Assembly: GCF_011386835.1 (NCBI RefSeq)
Contig: NC_088807.1
Location: forward strand, 19,220,001 to 19,284,000
Source of the DNA: Chrysemys picta bellii
Lineage: Eukaryota
Direction of reading: 5' to 3'
Length of the DNA stretch: 64,000 nt
Positions 25,701 through 64,000 of this stretch are shown here, in pieces. The notes under the pieces were generated by a model. The model was not told the origin of the DNA. It worked only from the letters and a program-made list of their open reading frames with translations, and searched no databases. Within the stretch, counting starts at the first letter, position 1, and each line of letters starts with the position of its first letter. Both the position numbers and the translations under genes were made by a program.

Positions 25701-28700
25701 CAAGTGAGTCCCTACATTCCCCCACCCATCCTCGCCCCCCGCCCGTTGCCGCCCGGCCCCCCCCACCTGTCTCAGCTTCCCGCCCGTCAGCTTGTCCAGC
25801 GAGTTCGACAGGGCGCTGTAGATGGTCACGAAGGTGAGGCTACTCCTGTGCCTGGCTGAGGGGGTGACAGAGCAATGAGACCCGGGGCAGCCACACGGGG
25901 TACTGTGGGGCACGGGGTGAGGGAGTTCCGGCCAGGGCCGGCTCCAAGTTTTTTGCCGCCTCAAGCAAAAAAATTTTCCCGTGCTCCCCCCCCCAACTCC
26001 GCCCCTTCCCCCGCCCATTCCAACCCCTTCCCCAAATCCCCAGCCCCACCTCCTCCCCTGGGCACACCACATTTCCCCTCCTACCCCTCCGTCCCAGGAA
26101 AGCCTGGGAGGGAGGGGGGAGAAGCGGAGCGGCAGCGGGCTCGGGGGAGCAGGCGGCAGTGGAGCGGAGGTGAGCTGGGGCGGGGGAGCAGTTCCTCCGG
26201 CCCCCCCAGGGTTACTTCCTGCGGCCCTCCCCGCACCCCCCACCGCCGCAGCTCACCTCTGCTCAGGGCCGGCTCCCGGCTTTTTGCGCCCCAAGCAAAA
26301 AAAAAAGGAGCCGGAGTGCCGCCCCTTGGAAAGTGCCACCCCAAGCACATGCTTGGAGCACTGGTGCCTAGAGCTGGCCCTGGTTCCGCCTCCCCAAGGC
26401 GCCCCTCCCCAGCGAGAAGTGCGGTGGGGTAGGGGGTGGGAACTTCCCTGGCTGTGGGAAGGAGAATTACCGCCATACCTGAACTCAGGGCCGATTTCAA
26501 CTTCCCCTTCGACTCCAATCTCTGCTCCCTGCGGAGGAAGATTCACAGTTCAGTTTCCGGTGACCCGGGGGCCCGAATATCCTGGGATAGTCACGTTAGG
26601 GCCTCGGATAGGGGTGACGGTACCATCCCCCTCCCACGTCCTGCTCAGCGACAGTGGGGTACGGGCCACTGCCTCCCATTTGTAAAGCTCCAGCCCCTGC
26701 CCTTTAGGTGAATAGAGAATCCCCCTCAGTCGGGAGCAGTACGGTGCATAGGATACGGTGTCAGAGAAATCCGACCGCAGCCAGCAGAGGGCAGATAGTT
26801 TGCTTGCACTCACGCATACACACGGAGAGGGACTCTTCCTCTCCAGCAGGGGGCGACAGGGACACACACACACACACACACACACGCTGAGACATGGCCC
26901 CTCTGGGGCAGGGCACAGGGGCTGCTCCTACGGGGACCCCACACCCAGTGCTAGGATGCGGCCCCTCTGGGGTGGGGCATGGGGGCTGGTCATATGGAGA
27001 CCCCTCATCCAGCGCTGGGATGCGACCCCTCTGGAATGGGGCACCGGGACTGGTCATACTGGGACCCCTCATCCAGCCCTGACATGCGGCCCCTCTGGGG
27101 TGGGGCCCGGAGGCTGGTTATGTGTTTAACCGATTCCCCACTTACCTGGATGGCTTCTTGTGGCCGGTGCTGCTGGCGCTGGACCGGGCTTTGCCTTTGT
27201 CGCTTTCTCCAACTGTCGCCCTGGACCTCGTTCCCTGTCTCTTGGCTTGACCCAACCGGGAGCTGCTCCGGCTCCTCTGCCCAGAGGGGCCCACGGCCAG
27301 GGCCACCGTGGCCCCCTCCGAAGGCCCCACACCCCCGGAGAGTTGAGATCTCTCCGGAGGTGCAGCAGCAGTCATGGGCGAGCTGGCTGGCTCCGGAAAG
27401 CTGGGAGCCCTGGAGCCACTGGGCCGCTCATGGGAGCTGGGGGTCATGGTGGCTCCTGTTGGCCCAGGCACCGTACTAGATCCACGCTGGCTCTGGGAAC
27501 GGGACCCGGTCTGCTCCGTGGAGGGGCTGGCGTGGCCCACCTGGGCTCGGCTCCTCTCCCCGGATCTCCCCGAGGGCTGGGCGCTGGCCAGCCTGGAAGG
27601 ACCCGCTGCCACCGAAGCAGTGAACGGTAGGGAGCGCCCCACGCCCACGGAGGTGGTGCCCACCGCCGAGCGCCCCACGCCCACGGAGGCTCTGGATCGC
27701 TCGGGGGAGCTGGGAGCCGTGGTGGCTCTGGATGCCGCACTAGATCCACGCTGGCTCTGGGAACGGGACCTGCCCTGCTCCGTGGAGGGGCTGGCGAGGC
27801 CCAGCTGGGCTCGGCTCCTCTCCGTGCTGGGCTCCCTGGATCTCCCGCCCGGCTCCATCTCTCCGCCCATCCCTGAGGGCCGGGTGCTAGCCGGCCTGGA
27901 GGGACCCGCTGCTGCCGATGCTGTGGCTACCGCCGAGCGCCCCACGCCCACGGAGGCGGTGCCCACCGCTGAGCGCCCCACGCCCACGGAGGCGGTGCCC
28001 ACCGCCGAGCGCCCCACGCCCACGGAGGCGGTGCCCACCGCCGAGCGCCCCACGCCCACGGAGGCTCTGGATCGCTCGGGGGAGCTGGGAGCCGTGGTGG
28101 CTCTGGATGCCGCACTAGATCCACGCTGGCTCTGGGAACGGGACCTGCCCTGCTCCGTGGAGGGGCTGGCGAGGCCCAGCTGGGCTCGGCTCCTCTCCGT
28201 GCTGGGCTCCCTGGATCTCCCGCTCGGCTCCATCTCTCCGCCCATCCCTGAGGGCCGGGTGCTAGCCGGCCTGGAGGGACCCGCTGCTGCCGATGCTGTG
28301 GCCACCGCTGAGCGCCCCACACCCATGGAGGCGGTGCCCACCGCCGAGCGCCCCACGCCCACGGAGGCGGTGCCCACCGCTGAGCGCCCCACGCCCACGG
28401 AGGCTCTAGATCGCTCGGGGGAGCTGGGAGCCGTGGTGGCTCTAGACCTGGCACTAGATCCAGGCTGGCTCGGGGTTCCTGCCGGGCTCTGGGAACCAGA
28501 GGGGATGGCCAGGCTCAGCTGGCCACGGTTCCTTTCTGCGCTCGGCTCCCCGGACACTGGGACCTGCTGTGGAGGGATCCTGGGGTAACGGCAACTCTAA
28601 CCACCAGACCCTCCTCCCCTCCCAGAGTCAGGGAGAGAACCCAGGCGTCCTGGATTCCAGCCCCGCCCCGCTCTAACCACCAGACCCTCCTCCCCTCCCA

Positions 28701-63378: not shown

Positions 63379-64000
63379 GTAAGTGGGGAATCGGTTAAAC
63401 ACATAACCAGCCTCCGGGCCCCACCCCAGAGGGGCCACATGTCAGGGCTGGATGAGGGGTCCCAGTATGACCAGTCCCGGTGCCCCATTCCAGAGGGGTC
63501 GCATCCCAGCGCTGGATGAGGGGTCTCCATATGACCAGCCCCCATGCCCCACCCCAGAGAGGCCGCATCCTAGCACTGGGTGTGGGGTCCCCGTAGGAGC
63601 AGCCCCTGTGCCCTGCCCCAGAGGGGCCATGTCTCAGCGTGTGTGTGTGTGTGTGTGTGTGTGTGTGTGTGTGTCCCTGTCGCCCCCTGCTGGAGAGGAA
63701 GAGTCCCTCTCCGTGTGTATGCGTGAGTGCAAGCAAACTATCTGCCCTCTGCTGGCTGCGGTCGGATTTCTCTGACACCGTATCCTATGCACCGTACTGC
63801 TCCCGACTGAGGGGGATTCTCTATTCACCTAAAGGGCAGGGGCTGGAGCTTTACAAATGGGAGGCAGTGGCCCGTACCCCACTGTCGCTGAGCAGGATGT
63901 GGGAGGGGGATGGTACCGTCACCCCTATCCGAGGCCCTAACGTGACTATCCCAGGATATTCGGGCCCCCGGGTCACCGGAAACTGAACTGTGAATCTTCC

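Follow-up and report, generated by a model that had tools for sequence, protein, structure and literature searches.

A probable false haplotype duplication carrying GARIN5B, TMEM238 and TMEM190 in the painted turtle reference assembly

The known palindromes of testis genes, among them P1-P8 of the human Y and those of the primate and mouse X, lie on sex chromosomes, where gene conversion keeps their arms more than 99.9% identical. The orthologues of GARIN genes and of TMEM190 are sperm genes in mammals, a class that is often amplified in palindromes. Near-identical copies can also be products of assembly. False duplications are mostly of the heterotype kind, in which two haplotypes are kept as paralogues, they sit in regions of raised heterozygosity and they show half the read depth (Ko et al. 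2022, PMC9516828). Overlapping contigs that stem from uncollapsed heterozygosity share long-range Hi-C contact patterns, as was described for the Aedes assembly AaegL5 (PMC6421076), so that a scaffolder sets them side by side.

Here we analyse an inverted repeat in a window of 64 kb from the assembly of the painted turtle Chrysemys picta bellii, and compare it with both kinds of system. With the testis-gene palindromes it shares a pair of inverted arms that stand around a unique spacer in the assembly, as well as arms that carry orthologues of mammalian sperm genes (GARIN5B and TMEM190). Whereas the palindromes keep more than 99.9% identity, the turtle arms are 98.96% identical, with 26 indels and VNTR arrays that are up to two-fold unequal; furthermore, one of the arm boundaries is hidden in a gap and the outer end lies beyond the window. 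With retained haplotigs as they have been described, including in connection with the 3D-DNA merge step of the AaegL5 assembly (PMC9516828, PMC6421076), the locus shares near-identical copies on one scaffold with a gap between them, a divergence of the order of, and somewhat above, the heterozygosity of the individual, a setting that is both repeat-rich and GC-rich, whole genes that appear as gains and an assembly procedure in which no purging is named. The second copy is probably a false (heterotype) duplication, that is, the other parental haplotype, kept and joined backwards at a scaffolding gap.

Geometry and divergence of the two copies

Self-BLAST, followed by chaining and re-alignment of the skipped pieces, showed that positions 48623-64000 match 26536-40486 in reverse complement, with colinearity along the whole length and far above chance expectation. 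The inverted duplication of at least 14 kb that a first-pass annotation of this DNA had described was thereby recovered. The left copy (26536..40486; 13,951 bp) lies inside a 41.6-kb contig (6473-48122) that has a 500-N gap at either end, and its left limit is set only by the point at which the window cuts the right copy. The right copy (48623..64000; 15,378 bp) starts at the first base of its contig and runs off the end of the window. The duplicated length of 14-15 kb is a minimum, since the window ends within the right arm.

Between the copies lies a scaffolding gap of 500 N (48123-48622). Homology reaches the very first base after it (39861-40486 against 49248-48623), in agreement with the earlier observation that the right arm begins exactly at the gap. 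Across this gap, continuity and orientation are putative. What appears as a spacer (40487..48122; 7.6 kb) is the continuation of the left contig past 40486. Its first part is low-complexity sequence rich in T and G, some 0.8 kb long (approximately 40450-41250) and located exactly at the stopping point of the right contig. Elsewhere in the window the spacer has no partner except SINE fragments and short repeats, and a weaker inverted repeat inside the spacer, by which the arms would be extended inward, was not found, the only matches being short local repeats. The inner boundary of a palindrome is not observed, since the inner end of the right arm is the contig end at the gap and its outer end lies beyond the window. 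The geometry is that of two contig ends that overlap by at least 14 kb and have been joined head to head by the scaffolder, with one of the overlapping contigs stopping where a difficult repeat begins.

Divergence was determined by means of global MAFFT alignments of ten repeat-free segments. These contain 8,687 matches and 91 substitutions in 8,778 aligned bases (1.04%), which corresponds to an arm-to-arm identity of 98.96% in repeat-free sequence, together with 26 indel events; 65 of the substitutions are transitions and 26 are transversions. Individual segments are 96.3-98.9% identical away from the large VNTRs, and the figure drops to 90-91% in alignments that traverse large tandem arrays. 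The copies differ in the length of several of these arrays. A 58-bp minisatellite occupies 36228..37691 in the left copy (about 25 units, 1.46 kb) and 51246..54286 in the right copy (3.04 kb, about double the left array), a coding 339/375-bp repeat has one unit more in the right copy than in the left, a 76-bp array has 4.2 copies on the left versus 3.2 on the right, and an 81-bp SINE-derived unit is present in the right copy only. Both earlier statements, that the arms are not identical and that several VNTRs are unequal in length, hold with these figures.

Genes in both copies and in other turtles

Exons were handled singly, rather than joined in a spliced gene model. The visible exons of a GARIN5B-like gene occupy 27145..31261 of the left copy, on the minus strand. 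They comprise an N-terminal exon ORF (31013-31261), the exon with the Rab2-binding domain (approximately 30480-30653), the exon that had been numbered 5 in the first-pass annotation (within 29966-30170) and a large repeat-bearing ORF of 484 aa (27145-28596), all on the same strand. The domain was recognised by Pfam PF12480 (GARIL_Rab2_bd; 5e-19) in the minus-strand ORF 29940-30653. The right GARIN5B-like gene (59001..63379, plus strand) has exons at 59001-59249, 59611-59784 and 60095-60299, open as in the left copy, and a large ORF of 597 aa at 61589-63379, which is 113 aa longer than the left one due to one extra in-frame 339-bp unit. The residue differences reported previously were found again: PPPS and EEEE in the left copy (near 30133 and 30100, minus strand) correspond to PPLS and EAEE in the right copy (near 60132 and 60165), exon 5 has five nucleotide differences, counted in 29966-30170, and a G/A residue difference is present in the N-terminal exon.

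On the minus strand, 23867-25360 is open for 498 aa and includes an in-frame repeat of 36 bp (24318-24555). This frame has no Pfam match and may represent an additional 3' exon of the GARIN5B-like gene; its position just beyond the visible duplicate is due solely to the truncation of the right copy at the window end.

The TMEM238 coding sequence of the left copy (33412..33783, plus strand; 123 aa) matches Pfam PF15125 with an E-value of 1.4e-24, in the plus-strand ORF 33187-33780. Its counterpart in the right copy (56616..56987, minus strand) has two synonymous differences, hence the protein is identical in both copies. A TMEM190-like gene is found at 35384..37921 on the minus strand of the left copy, with a trefoil exon motif at approximately 37792 and a 3' exon ORF at 35384-35608, and at 51035..55202 on the plus strand in the right copy, with the trefoil exon at approximately 51162 and the 3' exon ORF at 54978-55202. 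The 58-bp VNTR sits between these two exons. The trefoil exon is identical in both copies and the 3' exon ORF shows one residue difference. The match with TMEM190 (PF15431; 37650-37921, minus strand) has an E-value of 6e-5 and, at 23.5 bits, narrowly misses the curated cut-off of 25. The identities that had been proposed for GARIN5B, TMEM238 and TMEM190 are supported by these Pfam matches on the left copy, with TMEM190 just under its cut-off. The recognised exons of all three genes are open in both copies. A search of the literature on TMEM190, FAM71E2 and TMEM238 yielded nothing relevant.

For a comparison with other turtles, an exact look-up of the TMEM238 protein led to its whole 90% cluster of 15 members, a single cluster that paralogues 99% identical would share. 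It contains one TMEM238 accession each for Malaclemys terrapin, Gopherus evgoodei, G. flavomarginatus, Dermochelys, Mauremys reevesii and Emydura; M. terrapin and the painted turtle are members of one family. Mauremys mutica is represented by two identical GenBank entries, KAH1181137.1 and KAH1181211.1 (locus tags 002145 and 002071), which are 74 locus tags apart on one 39-Mb sequence, plus a 219-aa RefSeq model named TMEM238-like. Either the gene is truly duplicated there, or the pair is another assembly artefact of this kind. The single accession in most turtles argues against an old duplication and is compatible with a young one.

Assembly context and competing explanations

The contigs of the current reference, ASM1138683v2 / SLU_Cpb5.0, were made by hifiasm from approximately 20x HiFi reads and scaffolded with Tigmint/ARCS, then by 3D-DNA with Hi-C data, followed by Bionano curation of "major discrepancies" (PMC13077969). 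The assembly paper names no haplotig-purging step, and the terms purge and haplotig occur 0 times in it (PMC13077969). The primary assembly measures 2.372 Gb, against 2.337 and 2.329 Gb for the haplotype assemblies, an excess of 35-43 Mb; it has a contig N50 of 28 Mb and an N total of 541,420, and the sequenced animal has a heterozygosity of 0.48-0.71%, which its authors describe as high for turtles (PMC13077969). Gaps of exactly 500 N each interrupt the 64-kb window at 5973-6472 and at 48123-48622, and a spacing of only 42 kb between them, where the contig N50 is 28 Mb, indicates a locally fragmented region. Joins of 500 N are what 3D-DNA writes, and the N total fits roughly a thousand of them. 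Both contig breaks are at or near repeats, namely tandem arrays at the first gap and, for the end of the right contig, the start of the low-complexity stretch. The divergence of 1.04% between the copies is about twice the mean heterozygosity, which is compatible with alleles but not specific for them.

Since alleles and young paralogues of equal divergence cannot be separated by their sequence, the judgement rests on context. A false duplication is favoured because a gap lies between the copies and the alignment reaches the contig end, because the divergence of about twice the mean heterozygosity is accompanied by a kilobase-scale difference in VNTR length, because the primary assembly is larger than either haplotype by tens of Mb with no purging reported, and because most annotated relatives have one TMEM238. 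We infer that the two copies are alleles: they would represent the parental haplotypes of a single-copy locus with the order RASIP1 - COX6B2 - GARIN5B - TMEM238 - TMEM190. The stretch is GC-rich and dense in minisatellites, and the long-read assembly would have broken into short contigs here; with haplotypes about 1% apart and repeat lengths that differ at the kilobase scale, the assembler probably missed the allelism, so that both haplotypes entered the primary assembly. Hi-C scaffolding would then have set the extra contig beside its allelic partner, which has the same long-range contacts, and would have joined it via a 500-N gap in an orientation that is beyond the resolution of Hi-C at such a scale. 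Against this stand the open exons in both copies, which also fit functional paralogues, the divergence of 1%, which exceeds the mean heterozygosity of the genome, and the two TMEM238 entries of M. mutica, by which a duplication in this neighbourhood is not unthinkable. The first-pass annotation had considered an artefact at least as likely as a real duplication; the gap, the homology up to the contig end, the pipeline and the relatives favour the artefact.

A real inverted duplication as it is drawn, with autosomal arms of at least 14 kb that carry GARIN5B, TMEM238 and TMEM190 and flank a spacer of roughly 8 kb, seems quite improbable. Inverted colinear copies do exist in the assembly, the spacer occurs only once in the window, each recognised exon is open in either arm, with a coding repeat that differs by an in-frame 339-bp unit, and the mammalian orthologues of two of the genes are of the sperm-gene class mentioned above. 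Such a palindrome would postdate the split from Malaclemys and would have diverged by about 1% without strong arm-to-arm gene conversion. However, arms that are about 99% identical and differ in VNTR length do not resemble the known palindromes with gene conversion, the gap conceals the inner boundary where the right arm ends at a contig end, and contigs of a few tens of kb are too short for Hi-C to orient. Moreover, HiFi reads separate arms that are 1% apart, so the contig break is not explained by a palindrome itself, whereas pipeline and assembly sizes point to retained haplotigs and most relatives have a single TMEM238. The specific suggestion of an undescribed testis-gene palindrome is not supported, since the arms are about 99% and not above 99.9% identical, the VNTR lengths differ and the painted turtle is known to have temperature-dependent sex determination and no sex chromosomes. 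The same sequence evidence would also suit a young segmental duplication that is real but misplaced or misoriented in the scaffold, such as a tandem direct or distant copy that was placed there and flipped by Hi-C, and the two entries of M. mutica, so many locus tags apart, would be in line with it. We regard this as unlikely: the arguments from assembly context are the same as those against a palindrome, GARIN5B, TMEM238 and TMEM190 are not in expanding families in other annotated turtles, and neither a third diverged copy nor boundary sequence is visible in the window.

If the false duplication is indeed the explanation, GARIN5B, TMEM238 and TMEM190 are counted twice in the painted turtle reference, the mapping of short reads would be ambiguous along 14 kb or more, and claims of gene gain that are made from this assembly need a check of read depth. 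A true palindrome would instead be an uncommon example of sperm genes in a palindrome outside the sex chromosomes, young and lacking homogenisation by gene conversion.

Left flank and other features of the window

The gap at 5973-6472 is flanked by tandem arrays, one with a 61-bp unit (5205-5972) and one that is degenerate (6639-7703). Self-BLAST showed no near-identical duplicate across this gap, only a related minisatellite family with approximately 75% identity; the 61-bp array is approximately 75% similar to the 32/56-bp arrays at 39139-39710 and 49446-49819. RASIP1-like exons are found on the minus strand at 8297-9280 and 4980-5138. The ORF at 8297-8767 (minus strand) has a weak Pfam DIL match that covers positions 1-24 of 105 (E 0.005), and the remainder of the domain was not found before the gap, hence the RASIP1-like gene seems to be interrupted by it. 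The ORF at 4980-5138 on the minus strand, beyond the gap, resembles the C-terminal tail of RASIP1. If it truly is this tail, the join across the first gap is in the right order and orientation.

A COX6B-like first coding exon was recognised at 17249-17470 on the minus strand by its motif and a weak Pfam COX6B match (positions 1-17, E 0.004), which fits COX6B2 between RASIP1 and GARIN5B. An AT-rich island at 20000-22400, with a GC content of 0.41 in a region of 68% GC, is a remnant of a hAT-type transposon (approximately 20.4-22.4 kb) that has inverted arms at 20599-21166 and 21602-22179 with 83% identity and an ORF for the hAT dimerisation domain at 21021-21365 (2e-8). Finally, a tandem unit of 73-78 bp that is SINE-like in appearance (GGGAGAGAACCCAGGAGTCCTGGCTCCCAGCCCC...) forms many short arrays on both strands throughout the window, including those at 17466-17936, 28595-28914, 29704-29928, 31624-31864 and 32395-32677 among others.
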